Part shown: piece by piece, positions 8,535 through 55,678 of the stretch
Layout of the letters: every line of letters starts with the position of its first letter
How positions within the stretch are numbered: the first letter of the stretch is position 1
Source of the DNA: Octopus sinensis
Taxonomy: Eukaryota
Direction of reading: 5' to 3'
Length of the DNA stretch: 64,000 bases
Assembly: GCF_006345805.1 (NCBI RefSeq)
Contig: NC_043014.1
Coordinates: forward strand, 44,888,001 to 44,952,000
The notes under the pieces: model-generated
Told to the model about the DNA's origin: nothing
The model's database searches: none
Seen by the model: only the letters and a program-made list of their open reading frames with translations
Translations under genes and position numbers: made by a program

Positions 8535-8606
8535 TTATTCAGGGGCTGGTTCCTCAGTTGGGGCCTCTGCAACTTGTTCTTCGTTTTCGGCATCAGCTTC
8601 GGGTTC
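8535..8606 (-). CDS. Terminal coding exon of the IQ/repeat protein (EPEADAENEEQVAEAPTEEPAPE*)
   Basis: Acceptor ttttggtag|GAACCC (AG at 8608-8607). 23 Glu/Ala/Pro-rich codons then TAA (8537-8535). Phase 0 matches the donor at 13139, and composition continues the acidic tail of the upstream exon. Confidence 0.8.
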   Translation of the reverse strand, partial: EPEADAENEEQVAEAPTEEPAPE

Positions 8607-8869
8607 CTACCAAAACGTGTCCGTCGGAAGAGCAAGTATCATTTGTGACAATTCAAAGGTTTATTTTATTTTTGAATTGTGTTTTTTTTTAATTTTTATT
8701 ATTATTATTGATATGAAATAAAGAAAAAAGAAAAATTACAGTTAAGATTGGTTACAAACACAGATTCTAAACAATATAATGAATAAAAAAAAGCACAAAA
8801 ACAAAAAACAGGATACATACAAACACATACAATTTATATTACATATGAGTGGTGTATGTGTGTATGTGT

Positions 8870-9162
8870 GTACATACATACATATATATATATAAAGTGT
8901 ATATATATATATATATATATATATAGTGTGTGTATGTATATATATATATATATATATATAAAGTGTATATTTATATATATATATATATGTATATAGTGTA
9001 TATATATATATATATATATACACATATACATATATATATATATATACACTTTATATATATATATACATATACATTATATATATATATATATATATATATA
9101 TATATACATATATATATATATATATATAATATATATATATATATATATATATATATATATAA
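8870..9162. repeat. Compound (TA)n microsatellite
   Basis: Directly visible; similar tracts at 150-280, 1820-1885, 6445-6650, 7250-7370, 33860-33930, 49915-50005 and 55405-55480. Confidence 0.95.
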
Positions 9163-10135
9163 ATAAAGTGTATATGTATTATGTGTGAGTGTGTGAGTTT
9201 ACAAAAATACAGTAGCGCAGTGGATAAGAGTGTTGAAACTTTGACAATTGCAAAAATAATACAGTTAAAGATGAAAGATTAAAATCAACTTGAGCATCAG
9301 ATTACAGAAATTATAGACAAACTTCACAGAAAACCTGCTGCCTACCTATTCCTGACAGAAAACTGGACTGAGGTGTAGATAATAAGATACACTAGCAAAA
9401 TATTTACTGAACAATCTGCAGAAGATCTGAATGCAAGAGCTATTAAGTAGGTAGTCCAATGCCATATTCTCTCAACCATTCTACTGGTATGTTCTTTAAC
9501 TAGGGCTAATGTAAAGATTTTGAAACTTTGGACAAGAAATTTTGAAACTCTAGTGTTATCTTTAATATGCAAATGTGAATTGTGAAACCAGTAGAGGGAG
9601 AGAATAGAACTGGTGCTTAGCATTCAAGAGGATGTTATACAATCACTTGATCCTATTAAAAATAGTAACCAAATTTCCCTTAAAACACACCCTACCATCT
9701 TAGAAAAGGAACAGCTTACTGGAAAATATAATTCTAAATATACTATCTGTAAAAAACAATCATAAATTGAAGACCTGTGATGATAAATCTGTTCTGTCAA
9801 GACCTAATTGTGTCCAGTGGTAGCAATGGCCTTTATTTTAATTAAATGGAGAATCACAAATTTGAAATGAAAAATAAAATAAAAAGACAAAACAACAGAA
9901 CAAATACACACCCAAGTAAGGCACCTAGAGATGATTGGAGAATCATATTGGTCAAGCACAAAATCAGAAACATTACAAAATCTTTACTACACAGACTTAA
10001 TAAACGGTTTCATTATTCTCGAGGCATGTGCAATTCTTTGCTCAATTGGTCATCTTTGTTGGCTTTGTATCATAATTTCATTTGCTTTTGCTAAACTACC
10101 ACATGTATTGAATGAAAACTTTAAATGATAACGAT

Positions 10136-51240: not shown

Positions 51241-53721
51241 TTATTGGAACATATCTTTACTTCAATGTACTTCAATCAAAAAGCATCAAGATGATATGGT
51301 CGAACTGTATGGTACTGGTAATGTAATTTACTTTAAAAATAAAACACCTTGACAACAATATCATCTTTAGTAATGAAAATTGACTGTAGTGCAATGTTCC
51401 TTAAAGTACCCTAACAAAAGGATATTATGACTGAAATGTGCCTTGATTATATAGTTTCACTACAGTAATACATCTCAACTCCATGACACTTCAATTATAA
51501 GACGTCATAAATCTGTTTACTTCATGGATTATTTTTGAAGGAAATAAGATCTTATGTTGAAGAATTTATAAGCTTTGAATATTGCGACTACATTTTGCCT
51601 AAAACTTTGTCAGACAAATTTATATATTTTCTAAACTAATTAATCTGTTTCCTTTCATGCCACTGAGAATTGTAGTATCAGAATTTGGTTCCATTAATAG
51701 ACAACCTAGCAAAACTCAATTTTGAGATGCTGTAAAATTACCCAACTGAATAATTATTTAATTCTCTGGTCTGAAATAAGTATCTACCAACCAACCAACA
51801 AGCCAACCAACCAACCTCAAGGAAGGAATTTATAGCAAAAAGCAAAAAATAAGCGAAAGTAAAACGTAGGCAGGGAGAATATTTTAGATGGTTACAGAGC
51901 TGAAGAGAGAAAGGGTTAAGATAGTCTATTAGTGAGGGGTTTAGGGAATGAAATACAGTAAGAATGATAGGGAATTTAGATGGGTATGATACAAAGATTG
52001 CGAGTTCAGAGAGGCAGACACCATTGAAGTAGAGGTGGAAGGGAGATGGAAAGAGGAACTAACTGGTATGGGATAATGATTGTATACTACTGTATAGTGG
52101 TGAGTGAATCTTTGCCAATTAACAAGACAGTCAGTTTTTGGAGGTGGTCTACAATACTTGATAAAGGATTTAGTTTCCTTTTTTGATATATATACACACA
52201 CACATGCATACAAATATATATATGTGTGTGTGTATATATATATATATATATATATATATATATACACACATACACACACACATAGATACATATATATCAT
52301 CATTTAATATCCATTGTCCATTTTCCTATGCTTGCATGGGTCAAGAATTTGTTGAGGTAGATTTTCTATGGCCAGATACCCTTCCTATTGCAAACTCTGA
52401 TCTATTTCCAAGCAAGGTAATATTTTCCCATAGCTAGAGATTTTTTTCATGAAAGACTAAACAAACCTTATTTGTATGACAATGGTGCTCATTTACAATC
52501 ATTATGTGATGTCTTATCATAGGTACACACAAACACACATATGCATAAGTATATATGATGTGCTTATTTCAGTTTCTGTACCAAATCCACTCACAAGGCT
52601 TCACTTGACTAGAGACTATAGTAGAAGACATATATATATATGTGTATATATATATATATATGTATATGTATATATATATATATATATAGTCTCACCCATG
52701 CTAGCATGGAAAGCAGATGTTAAACAATGATGATGATTATATGTGTGTGTGTGTGTGTGTGTGTGTGTGTGTGTGTAGTAGTAATGATGGAGGCTGAGAG
52801 TCACATTTGTGACTCAAACCTATGTCAACATCTATTACTTCCACTGCCTCTCCCCCCTCTTTTATCCCTATACTCTGTCGCTGATGCAACTAGAGATAAA
52901 AGTACACCTCTCCTATTCACCGTATCATACTGCCTGAGTACTGATGGCTTTGGCCCTGGCCACTTACTGATGCTCACTTTCTCCTCTCTTAACTGTAACA
53001 TTCTCTATTTACCATAACAAGAGGTAGTACAGGACATACCTCTGCATCTAGTGGATAATCCTTATCCACTATCCTCAACTCACAAACTCACCAATGTCCA
53101 CCTTTATTACTATCCATCTCTCCTCTCCGTCTACCACCCTCTTGCCCTAAAAGTGTGTTTTTATCATTGTATTCTTGCTCCTTCCACCCAACAATCCTGG
53201 TTCTTTTTCTGTCATCAGTCTTGATATTATAAGCCATTAAGTTCTGTGTCATGAGGAAATGAACACTTCACAGAATAGTGAAGACTTTTTTTTCTCACAG
53301 AGTACAAGGCAACCTCACCAATGCCTGTGCCTAGTAAAATGTACCCAGTACACACTTCAAGGTGGTTGACGAACAAGGAGAGATGATGCTGAGTCAATAG
53401 TACCCTTTAGTGATGTCAAGGACATGACTACACCTCTACTGCTATTGTCATAAAATATGTCCATTACACCCACAAAATACATGGTTAAGTGGTTGATAAC
53501 AAAAAGGGTATCCACCCATGGACAAAAAGTCAAAAATAGAAATGTGTAAGTGATACGACTGACCTCTGAAACATCTCATATATGTGTGTGCACATGCATG
53601 TGTGCCTGGAGGAGGACATTAATTCTGAATAAGAATTGACTGGGATTGTAGTCACCTGCTCAACCCTTGCAAGCATGAAAAGTAGACACAAAAGGATGAT
53701 CATACATACATACATACATAG

Positions 53722-54020
53722 GAGCACTCCGTCAGTTGCAACGACAAGGGTCCCAGCTGATACGATTAACGGAACAGCTTGCTGGTGAAATTAACGTGCA
53801 AGTGGCTGAGAACTCCACAAACACATGTACCCTTAACATAGTTCTCAGAGAGATTCAGTGTGACACAGTGAGTGACAAAGCCGACCCTTTGAAATACAGG
53901 TACTACTCATTTTTGCCAGCTGAGTGGACTGGAGCAACGTGAAATAAAGTGTCTTGCTCAAGGACACAACGCGTCGCCGGGAATTGAACTCATGACCTTA
54001 CGATCATGAGCTGAATACAT
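53722..54020 (-). mobile_element. tRNA-derived SINE, family E, with CORE-like segment
   Basis: Minus strand: gagttcaattcccggcgac...tgtgtccttgagcaagacacttt. CORE-domain resemblance is from memory. Confidence 0.6.
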
Positions 54021-55627
54021 AAATAAATAAATAAATACACATATTTATGAGTTAGTAATGGAAGGATGGGCACCACTTGTATGCCCATATCCTTTGAAGT
54101 CTCTCTCAGACTGATGAATCTCATGCCAAATTTGAAAATTATACACACTAAAATATGAAGACATACATTTAAGATACTTTACAATTCACTTCATTGCAAT
54201 TGTCAAATCAATGTTTCGGAATTCAAGCACCACTGCATTCACTGAATGGAAAAGTGATGCAACAAAGGGTACTGAAAAGGGATTTTGGCTGTATATTTAA
54301 ATCATAGTAGTTTATTTGAATAACAAGCTGGAAATAATTAGGTACAAAGGTAAAAATCAATTGACTTAACCTTAGCATATTACTGGTACTTTTCATTTCT
54401 ACCCCACTGCCATCTCAGAAAGATGAAACACTGGGAGAGTATGAAGAACTAAACTAGATATTGTACAACAAACATTCCAAGTATCTAATTTAGTTCTCCA
54501 CTCTTTATACCAACTCCAACAACAACAACAATGATTCCTAATTAAGGTACAAGAAAGAGGACAAGTTTATGATATTGTGGCTAAGAAGGGAGGAGGGTGG
54601 GTGGGTATAGGAAATTAAATTGACACCTGTATTTGACTGGTAATTATTTTGCCTATGATAGGAAGATGAAAGACAATGCTAAGCTTAAGAAATGATGCAG
54701 GGAGAAAAGAAATGTAAAGCAAATACCACAAGGTGTTTAGCTTAGCATTTAGCAAAAAGTGGCAACAACATCAACAGCAACAATGCAACGGCAACACTCT
54801 TGAGATAATCTCTTCAAAGAAAATGAAGTTAAGATTTTCAACAGCTTAAATATAGAAGTGGGATATCATGGACTCACACATAATAGCTTTTTTTTTTTTA
54901 ACATCTAACAATAAAAAATTTGCAGAAAACAAACGAAACAAGGAACCAAGAACCAGAATAAGACAAGAACAAGAAAAATAACAAAAAAAGATTAATATTG
55001 TGCTGTAAAGCGGCCTCCCTTTAAAAGGGAGCAATACTATTGACAGAGTTGGATCAAATCAAATTACTTATACACAACCTTGTTGCTCAATAGTGGTGAT
55101 TGGTTTTGAATAGACACGGCTTATATTGAAAAGAGAGAACGTATCTAGTTGGTTGCATTGATTTTACTGTATATATATATCTAATACGTTTAGAAAGTCT
55201 ACTTACAGGATGCAAAGTAGAATTGACCCTGGGAGGTTTAAACTCAGGACAGATGCATTGAATCAGATAGAAAAATGTAATAATTCAGCTCTGTAGAATT
55301 AGTTCTCTCCAAGACAAAACCATTATTTTTCTTAATTCTAAGTCATTTACAGAATTATTATTTATATAATTTTAACATAAAATTTCCAAGTTATTATTAA
55401 GTGTGGATATATATATATATATATATATATATATATATATATATATATATAATATATATATATATATATACATATATATGAAAGACAGTAACTCAGATTT
55501 TTAAATGATTGTTTATTATTAATATTTTAATTATTTATAATTATTTATCTTCTTGTTGTGTATAAGTATTCATAGGAAAAAAAATAATAAATAGTATCAT
55601 TTATTTCAAAGTAATTTATCATCTGAC

Positions 55628-55678
55628 CTGTGTCTCTGCCTGGTCAGCTTCACCTTGCTCAGTTTCAAGAGTGTGTTC
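55628..55678 (-). CDS. Small internal exon (EHTLETEQGEADQAETQ)
   Basis: Long poly-pyrimidine tract ttttttttcttttttttttcatattctcag|GAA; donor CAG|gtcaga; 51 nt, phase 0-0. Acidic composition matches the other exons. Confidence 0.72.

Follow-up and report, generated by a model that had tools for sequence, protein, structure and literature searches.

Three PEP-19-Like Acidic IQ Modules in the Probable 3' Part of an Octopod Sp17-Like Gene

A 64,000-nucleotide stretch of the Octopus sinensis genome (RefSeq assembly GCF_006345805.1, contig NC_043014.1, positions 44,888,001 to 44,952,000 of the forward strand; hereafter the window) was analyzed for a minus-strand gene that encodes three IQ modules, each preceded by an acidic leader like that of PEP-19. 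The window probably contains the 3' part of an octopod orthologue of the invertebrate Sp17-like genes, with the head of the protein and further IQ modules encoded upstream, beyond position 64000, and with a product that would act as a multivalent calmodulin holder and tuner. Only the two exons that carry the three modules (exons B and C) are shown here, by sequence homology, to have a place in the Sp17-like family. A sequence-only reading of positions 8535-55678 had proposed a novel scaffold in which three acidic IQ modules are joined to a Ser-rich repeat tail, and had offered two identities for it, a flagellar or ciliary relative of Sp17 or a neuronal analogue of GAP-43 and igloo.

Three acidic IQ modules and their exons

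The gene model consists of five minus-strand exons (A-E) with AG/GT borders, all assigned phase 0, and none of the five overlaps an interspersed repeat. The limits of the sequence-only reading coincide exactly with exon borders, 55678 being the first base of the 51-nt exon and 8535 the last base of the stop codon.

Exon A (candidate), 55628..55678, minus strand: 51 nt, phase 0; acidic spacer EHTLETEQGEADQAETQ
Exon B, 41331..41492, minus strand: 162 nt, phase 0; IQ1 module NIDTDLTDPEAIAAATKIQAGFRGHIARQHV at 41346-41438
Exon C, 37051..37652, minus strand: 602 nt; IQ2 at 37497-37589 and IQ3 at 37075-37167, with an acidic Pro/Glu/Lys linker of ~95 residues between them
Exon D (candidate), 13139..14704, minus strand: 1566 nt, 522 residues, phase 0 at both ends; Ser-rich array at 13407-14468
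Exon E (candidate terminal exon), 8535..8606, minus strand: EPEADAENEEQVAEAPTEEPAPE and a stop codon at 8537-8535

The three module peptides named in the sequence-only reading were found verbatim on the minus strand (41355-41435, 37503-37589, and 37096-37167). The Pfam IQ model (PF00612) was run as that reading had suggested and gave IQ1 27.3 bits, above the cut-off of 20.3 bits, and IQ2 and IQ3 19.9 and 19.0 bits, below it. A family profile was then built from 403 DIDL-IQ modules of homologues and run on all six-frame open reading frames (ORFs) of the window, where it scored the three modules at 53.9, 70.7, and 57.7 bits (E 1e-15 to 1e-20). The next-best ORF reached only 5.8 bits and the window therefore holds exactly three modules; no fourth was found by this profile. 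The modules are carried in at least 271 residues within the window alone, and the product of exons A-C is acidic (pI 4.6), as had been proposed, with five aromatic residues and no Cys.

In the structure of PEP-19 bound to the apo C-lobe of calmodulin, the acidic stretch is anchored by Phe30, Ile32, and Met34 in the space between helices E and F of Ca2+ site III, with Asp31 and Asp33 forming a negative basin and Pro37 fixing the turn into the IQ helix; a P37G change removes the tuning and leaves binding intact (PMC5122967). The acidic leaders of the octopus modules read I-D-T-D-L-T-D-P (IQ1), I-D-I-D-L-N-D-P (IQ2), and V-D-I-D-L-G-D-P (IQ3), which places I-T-L, I-I-L, and V-I-L, respectively, at the three anchor positions; the Thr of IQ1 at the Ile32 position is the sole and a partial departure from the PEP-19 pattern. 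The positions of Asp31 and Asp33 are occupied as xDxDL in all three modules, and both are essentially invariant across the 403 family modules, although for the first of the two the invariance is built in by the pattern used to collect the set. Pro is found at the Pro37 position in all three modules, eight residues before the IQ (DPEAIAAATKIQ, DPEVEAAALKIQ, and DPDVAAAALKIQ), which is the spacing of PEP-19 (F-D-I-D-M-D-A-P...IQ). A search of PDB sequences returned PCP4 as the best match (2N77_B, E 8.8e-5), on IQ2 including its acidic leader, followed by human Sp17 (8J07_K) and then by IQ constructs of neuromodulin and neurogranin (4E53, 4E50), which the core of IQ1 resembles. GAP-43 and neurogranin carry a protein kinase C (PKC) switch Ser within the IQ motif (IQxS; PMC3589724). 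At this position (IQxSFR, Ser41/Ser36) the octopus modules have Gly, Gly, and Asn (IQAGFR, IQSGFR, and IQANFR).

Judged by every sequence criterion that can be tested, the modules qualify for PEP-19-like action, and the claim of a PEP-19-like DIDxxxP leader next to the IQ is borne out by the anchors, the Asp residues, and the Pro at identical spacing. The gene itself is not an orthologue of PEP-19, neurogranin, or GAP-43. To our knowledge, the acidic-IQ unit of PEP-19 is the only sequence element known to tune the Ca2+ kinetics of calmodulin, and its key residues are kept in modules from cnidarians to cephalopods.

Exon B is bounded by tag|CTT and AAG|GTAGGA, and exon A by a long polypyrimidine tract with AG and by CAG|GTCAGA. 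Joined to exon B, exon A aligns with residues 81-140 of human Sp17 (8J07_K, E 0.006; PDB sequence search), and it loosely resembles the SEHLENEKDANNS spacer that precedes an exon-B-like module in an RNA contig of another species (L008, described below). Exon A is nevertheless the weakest candidate and the least secure of the exons.

Placement in the Sp17-like family

The joined IQ exons match 208 proteins. The top named matches, from Mya, Dreissena, Patella, Ruditapes, Owenia, Branchiostoma, and Nematostella, are proteins of 420-450 residues with RIIa (PF02197) and IQ motifs (E 1e-47 to 1e-31) that share one architecture: an RIIa domain (MAVPFSNTKLRVP...), ETGHDP...EDRFYNN, two plain IQs, and about five EE[IV]DIDLNDPEV..A..KIQAGF[KR]G modules. 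RIIa followed by ETGHDP...EDRFYNN is the N-terminal signature of Sp17/SPA17. A query composed of exons C, D, and E had a single match, the Argonauta hians protein Ahia01_000599000 (P0121, 510 residues, RIIa and IQs). Exon C aligns with its residues 294-506, that is, with the last 213 residues aligned, linker included, from the DTSP start to the KKKK that follows IQ3. A search with P0121 in turn recovered RIIa-multi-IQ proteins throughout the molluscs, including Haliotis, Crassostrea, Mytilus, Pomacea, and Littorina. Some of these are named Sp17 (Littorina, and Mytilus edulis, "Sperm surface protein Sp17"), a Liolophura member reaches 741 residues with ~11 modules, and up to 16 RefSeq isoforms are annotated per gene in molluscan relatives, which makes the alternative splicing proposed for the octopus gene plausible.

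A second line of evidence comes from a transcript. A more distant homologue of exon C (P0118, 39% identical) belongs to a cluster that contains P0322, the translation of the 2.2-kb RNA contig L008 (SRR5319791). The order in this contig is ...EETGQDP..LEDRFYNNDSFK, an IQ, a DIDL-IQ module, a second DIDL-IQ module, the exon-C homologue, and a last exon with an IQ and a stop codon. The second DIDL-IQ module is 69% identical to the IQ1 module of the window and is spliced directly to the exon-C homologue, which supports the predicted B-to-C junction. The 5' end of the contig (GENQVQTLEETGQDP) is unlike the end of an RIIa domain. Overall, the Argonauta alignment and the transcript support the assignment of exons B and C to an octopod or cephalopod Sp17-like gene, and of the two identities first offered, that of an Sp17 relative is upheld: exon C is orthologous to the C-terminus of the Argonauta RIIa-IQ protein, and EDRFYNN, an exon-B-like module, and an exon-C homologue stand together in L008.

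The multivalent acidic-IQ scaffold did not prove to be new. Its architecture is already widely annotated, the family being present in many molluscs, annelids, cnidarians, and lancelets, and with molluscan orthologues of up to ~11 modules the octopus gene is an ordinary member of it. The sequence-only reading had taken a previously characterised orthologue of this architecture as a refutation; RIIa-multi-IQ proteins are annotated in many molluscs, though no experimental characterisation of the invertebrate Sp17-like proteins was found in the literature searched.

Several points weigh against the assignment of the window to the 3' part of an Sp17-like gene. Neither RIIa (PF02197) nor the EDRFYNN linker was found in the window by tblastn with eight RIIa heads of the family and P0121, and the window exons are tied to an RIIa head by orthology only. 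P0121 comes from an automatic gene model, 270 kb in extent. In L008, EDRFYNN and the IQs are read in different frames of the contig (break at nt ~330-380), which makes the contig a physical link and not one ORF; an error in the contig, retention of a piece, or use of another junction could account for this. The terminal IQ exon of P0322 was not found in the window, and exon C contains a frame-breaking 1-nt deletion. The Argonauta protein and the transcript-derived P0322 both lack a counterpart of exons D and E. Calmodulin binding and kinetic tuning, finally, are predictions for the invertebrate members.

The missing head bears on the second of the two identities as well. The absence of RIIa noted in the sequence-only reading was confirmed, and no plausible MGxxx[ST] start exon was found upstream of exon C in the window by a regular-expression search, so that an RIIa domain, an EDRFYNN linker, or an acylated start within the window was rejected. 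The 5' exons with the RIIa head are expected to lie beyond position 64000, because the Argonauta gene spans 270 kb and introns in another relative exceed 10 kb. A different kind of head is annotated elsewhere. RefSeq lists, for the Sp17-like gene of Haliotis, Ruditapes, Mytilus, and Solemya, isoforms whose first exons (MGGKLSRL... or MGNNFS...) replace RIIa. When these isoforms (P0252, P0262, P0288, P0289, and P0112) were compared with those carrying RIIa (P0214-P0217, P0008, and P0237), the alternative first exons were seen to fit the N-myristoylation pattern and both types of head to join at ETGHDP...EDRFYNN. The two identities first offered, Sp17 relative and igloo analogue, may accordingly correspond to alternative heads of a single gene. 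Arthropod proteins annotated as "neuromodulin-like" (P0058, P0061, P0067, and P0109) are ~150 residues long and combine three DIDL-IQ modules with an MGCxxS start, which the molluscan alternative first exons resemble. Sp17 and the igloo-type calpacitins may thus share an origin.

These observations, together with the similarity of the IQ1 core to the IQ of GAP-43 and neurogranin, give some ground for an alternative in which the main product is a neuronal, GAP-43/igloo-type calpacitin anchored to the membrane, with an N-acylated head ahead of the IQ modules, a reading compatible with the Sp17-like assignment if one gene makes both heads. It is considered unlikely: the window contains no MGxxx[ST] start exon, the PKC-switch Ser is replaced in all three modules, the closest annotated relative carries RIIa, and the arthropod matches are far weaker (1e-20) than the molluscan RIIa proteins (1e-47).

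The frame of exon C and the Ser-rich tail

The length of exon C (602 nt) is not a multiple of three, and IQ2 and IQ3 are encoded in different frames. The IQ2 frame ends at a stop codon (37448-37446), and the IQ3 frame is open for 149 codons through to the donor site. Compared with three Logan contigs of a related octopod (L001-L003; 86% nucleotide identity to the window across intron and exon), one base is missing in the window between 37496 and 37495, and in that species exon C is a single ORF of 588 nt (P0001) whose product, 82% identical to that of the window, is the best match in the protein collection. The ratio of nonsynonymous to synonymous substitution (dN/dS) between exon C and L001 is 0.33 overall and 0.37 downstream of the break, and the other indels (12 nt and 3 nt) are all multiples of three. 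Over the last 45 codons, which contain IQ3, the protein is identical in the two species despite four synonymous changes, and identity to L001 rises from ~85% in the introns to 96-100% in IQ2 and 96-98% in IQ3. Because dN/dS is low, the indels are in frame, the IQ3 changes are synonymous only, and identity peaks at the modules, the data indicate that the IQ3 frame is translated now or was until very recently, and since this frame appears to be still under purifying selection the 1-nt deletion is most likely an assembly or consensus error.

If the deletion were real, the product would be truncated after IQ2 (ending ...KKKKTEEMKNIQLRLTLKKRLM before the stop) or the gene would be a young pseudogene, and IQ3 and everything downstream would not be translated from the mRNA. 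In its favour, the base is missing relative to three independent contigs, and the site is not a long homopolymer. This alternative is nonetheless improbable given the downstream dN/dS, the in-frame indels, the identical IQ3 protein, the conservation of IQ3 above the level of the introns, and the 149 codons that stay open to the donor. Programmed -1 frameshifting was set aside as a rescue, as direct reading of the 49-nt overlap of the two frames revealed no canonical slippery heptamer (X XXY YYZ), and this too counts against a real deletion. The frame break between IQ2 and IQ3 had been missed in the sequence-only reading, and it would corrupt any automatic gene model at the locus.

Just 3' of the exon C donor (~36980-37050), the intron opens with ~70 nt that share 94-98% identity with the related species, compared with ~85% for introns in general. 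This stretch reads through from the exon as a hydrophobic sequence (VLILNYSAILSHWWCSVAYCMF) before a 1-nt indel breaks the frame shared by the two species; it could be a splicing-control element or, left unspliced, could supply a different C-terminus. In two distant family members (P0272 and P0291) the protein likewise ends in a hydrophobic stretch after the last IQ.

The Ser-rich array of exon D consists of a 54-nt unit (18 residues) that Tandem Repeats Finder reports in 19.7 copies at 13407-14468 (94% matches, score 1672). Read in frame, it yields 17 near-identical SSQR[GE]SK[AT]SL[QP]AEVPxAP units, preceded and followed by degenerate copies, in agreement with the 17-19 repeats counted earlier. 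The exon D product is 22% Ser/Thr and 15% Pro, contains 25 RxS and 23 SK[AT]S motifs, lacks aromatic residues and Cys, and has a pI of 9.3. Exon D is bounded by the acceptor ctacag|GAA and the donor CAA|GTAAGT; without use of the donor the ORF ends in ...ETQVSYQATIAKKSAENIK with a stop at 13091. Exon E has the acceptor ttggtag|GAA with a weak polypyrimidine tract, and AATAAA signals follow at 8161 and 7932. That exon D is coding is suggested by a frame that runs ~100 codons past the array on each side, by degenerate copies of unequal length in which the frame and the SK[AT]S core are preserved, by flanks free of aromatic residues and Cys, and by good splice sites in phase. The term "phospho-repeat" applied to it is drawn from the sequence, and phosphorylation is a prediction made from the RxS and KxS motifs.

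The case for joining exon D to the IQ exons is circumstantial. The two lie on one strand in phases that allow them to be joined, the interval from exon C to exon D showed no further coding exon or Pfam domain, and other family members have Ser/Thr-rich spacers and acidic Ala/Glu/Pro tails, the latter being common (e.g., Nematostella P0021, Elysia P0010, and Pomacea P0286). An octopus-specific C-terminal tail of ~20 R-x-S-K-x-S repeats and a short acidic terminal exon, reached through an exon C-D junction, is put forward tentatively, with a little less than an even chance of being correct. The earlier proposal that the IQ exons continue into the Ser-rich tail draws its support from strand, phase, and composition only, and the lack of a tail in P0121 and L008 and of any homologue of the repeat speaks against it. 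It also falls just short of being probable that exons D and E lie outside the IQ gene, either as a separate downstream gene (an in-frame ATG is present at exon D codon 4, MEIGDV...) or as an open but non-coding 54-bp minisatellite. The failure of both homology searches, the absence of such a tail from the Argonauta and transcript-derived proteins, the 22 kb between exons C and D, and an array that is open in two other frames too all fit this alternative; the frame maintained beyond the array through the degenerate copies, the composition of the flanks, the AG and GTAAGT borders in a phase compatible with exons C and E, the lack of any other exon in between, the similar spacers and tails of relatives, and the weak context of the ATG (C at -3) do not.

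No homologue of exon D was found by a word-index search or by an exhaustive HMMER scan of 1.84 billion representatives, and the matches that these returned were discarded. The word-index match of the exon C-D-E query was driven by the IQs, and the HMMER matches were unrelated repeat proteins (16-50% identity), among them phage-like or bacterial RRGRLSWAELEVP arrays, all rejected as compositional or periodic matches. The closest likeness to the SSQRGSKASLPAEVPV unit was observed in P0145 (an ENA contig, 1094 residues), which has ~8 copies of SSxRGRAASLTLEAPV and is 47% identical over ~160 residues; this likeness is probably convergent. Neither exon D nor exon E was found within 10 kb on either side of the exon-C homologue of another species (L007, L004), a result of no weight since the introns there are longer than these flanks. 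The Argonauta tail (GFGANKNMENQE) was not found in the window.

The remainder of the window is AT-rich eukaryotic DNA (35% G+C), rich in microsatellites and short interspersed repeats. Approximately 31 intervals belonging to several interspersed repeat families of 150-600 bp, similar to short interspersed elements (SINE-like), make up ~16% of the window (e.g., 280-457, 3343-3739, 11960-12150, 17639-17880, 32187-32648, 36120-36732, 48588-49001, and 61289-61694) and give rise to recurrent pseudo-peptides such as ...RPTEERVRESFGERVQQGSPP.... A short open stretch on the minus strand (16366-16533, ...VGVHQGSVLSSLLFIIDLQAV...) had no Pfam match at E 0.01 and resembles the conserved reverse-transcriptase motif of long interspersed elements (LINEs). 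A long imperfect (CA/CACG)n tract at 30200-30630 (strong GC skew, 0.32 in 30001-32000) and long AAT/ATT-type tracts at 10050-10450 and 39170-39580, which produce poly-Asn, poly-Ile, and poly-Tyr pseudo-ORFs, are ordinary simple sequence. The other ORFs in the window gave no hits in searches against Rfam and Pfam or for tRNAs.

Proposed function and comparison with known systems

Proteins of the family have an RIIa docking/dimerisation (D/D) head, followed by the EDRFYNN linker and a disordered acidic chain in which the DIDL-IQ modules are arrayed. Each module would bind one calmodulin, or a calmodulin-like light chain, through its IQ helix. The preceding [IV]-D-[IT]-D-L-x-D-P stretch would, like that of PEP-19, cover Ca2+ site III in the C-lobe and speed up Ca2+ exchange by electrostatic steering; the protein would then be both a multivalent holder and a tuner of calmodulin. 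The RIIa head is predicted to dock on AKAP-type helices, for instance that of RSPH3 in axonemal radial spokes, so that the protein would be likely to act in sperm flagella and motile cilia, and the Ser-rich tail, if real, would be a plausible multi-site substrate for basophilic kinases. The most likely role is that of an axoneme-docked disordered arm that holds several calmodulins and speeds up their Ca2+ exchange. SPA17 is conserved across Metazoa, its D/D domain forms a heterodimer with ROPN1L that binds an AKAP helix, and the authors of that study liken it to the radial-spoke protein RSP7 (PMC8339350). Furthermore, a model of bovine sperm radial spoke 1 contains SPA17 together with calmodulin (CALM) and CAMK4 (PMC11755891), and in the oyster high levels of Sp17 mRNA are seen in ripe testis, in gills, and in labial palps (PMC3348941).

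The invertebrate Sp17-like proteins are widespread, heavily spliced, unstudied, and equipped with many PEP-19-type units, and to this picture the octopus member alone adds little. Such arrays may buffer and tune calmodulin in flagella and cilia, an idea that peptides would allow to be tested directly. If spliced to the IQ exons, the Ser-rich tail would count as an innovation of the lineage. A wider scenario, which must be regarded as doubtful, is that octopods extended the tail of the Sp17-like gene by an exon of ~20 R-x-S-K-x-S copies, with ~115 Ser/Thr and a mildly basic character until phosphorylation. If this were true, a single chain would unite AKAP docking, a calmodulin-tuning array, and a large multi-site phospho-acceptor, forming an integrator of Ca2+ and kinase signals at the axoneme or membrane with no counterpart elsewhere in animals. 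More broadly, the related loci allow a reading, equally doubtful, in which one ancestral gene with alternative RIIa or myristoylated heads gave rise to both Sp17 and the igloo-type calpacitins.

Among known systems, PEP-19/PCP4 and neurogranin share with the window modules the acidic stretch before the IQ, the same hydrophobic anchors, the two Asp residues, the Pro, and the spacing. They are vertebrate, neuron-enriched proteins of 62-78 residues with a single module, whereas the window encodes three, and the PKC-site Ser of neurogranin has no counterpart in these. GAP-43, igloo, and the arthropod "neuromodulin-like" proteins are likewise disordered acidic chains with IQ modules, the arthropod ones having three DIDL-IQ modules like the window, but they begin with an acylation start (MGC... 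or MLCC...) of which the window has none, are much shorter, and give weaker similarity scores. Vertebrate SPA17, an R2D2-type docking protein of cilia and flagella, aligns through its residues 81-140 with exons A and B, and its IQ core (AAVKIQAAFRGHIAR in human) can be set beside that of IQ1 (AAATKIQAGFRGHIAR); it has ~150 residues and a single IQ with no DIDL leader, in contrast to the three modules with leaders and the possibly long tail of the window. The invertebrate Sp17-like proteins, compared here through the models of Argonauta hians, Mytilus edulis, Liolophura, Haliotis, Crassostrea, Mya, Patella, Owenia, Nematostella, and Branchiostoma, differ in that they have a head of RIIa and EDRFYNN, which is absent from the window, and that none has the 18-residue Ser-rich repeat; the octopod gene for its part has a long linker (~95 residues) separating IQ2 from IQ3. 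In the module consensus (EEE[IV]DIDLNDPEVEKAATKIQAGF[KR]GHKARKE), the acidic disordered spacers, and the presence of several modules per chain, these proteins, of which many isoforms are annotated, resemble what is seen in the window.

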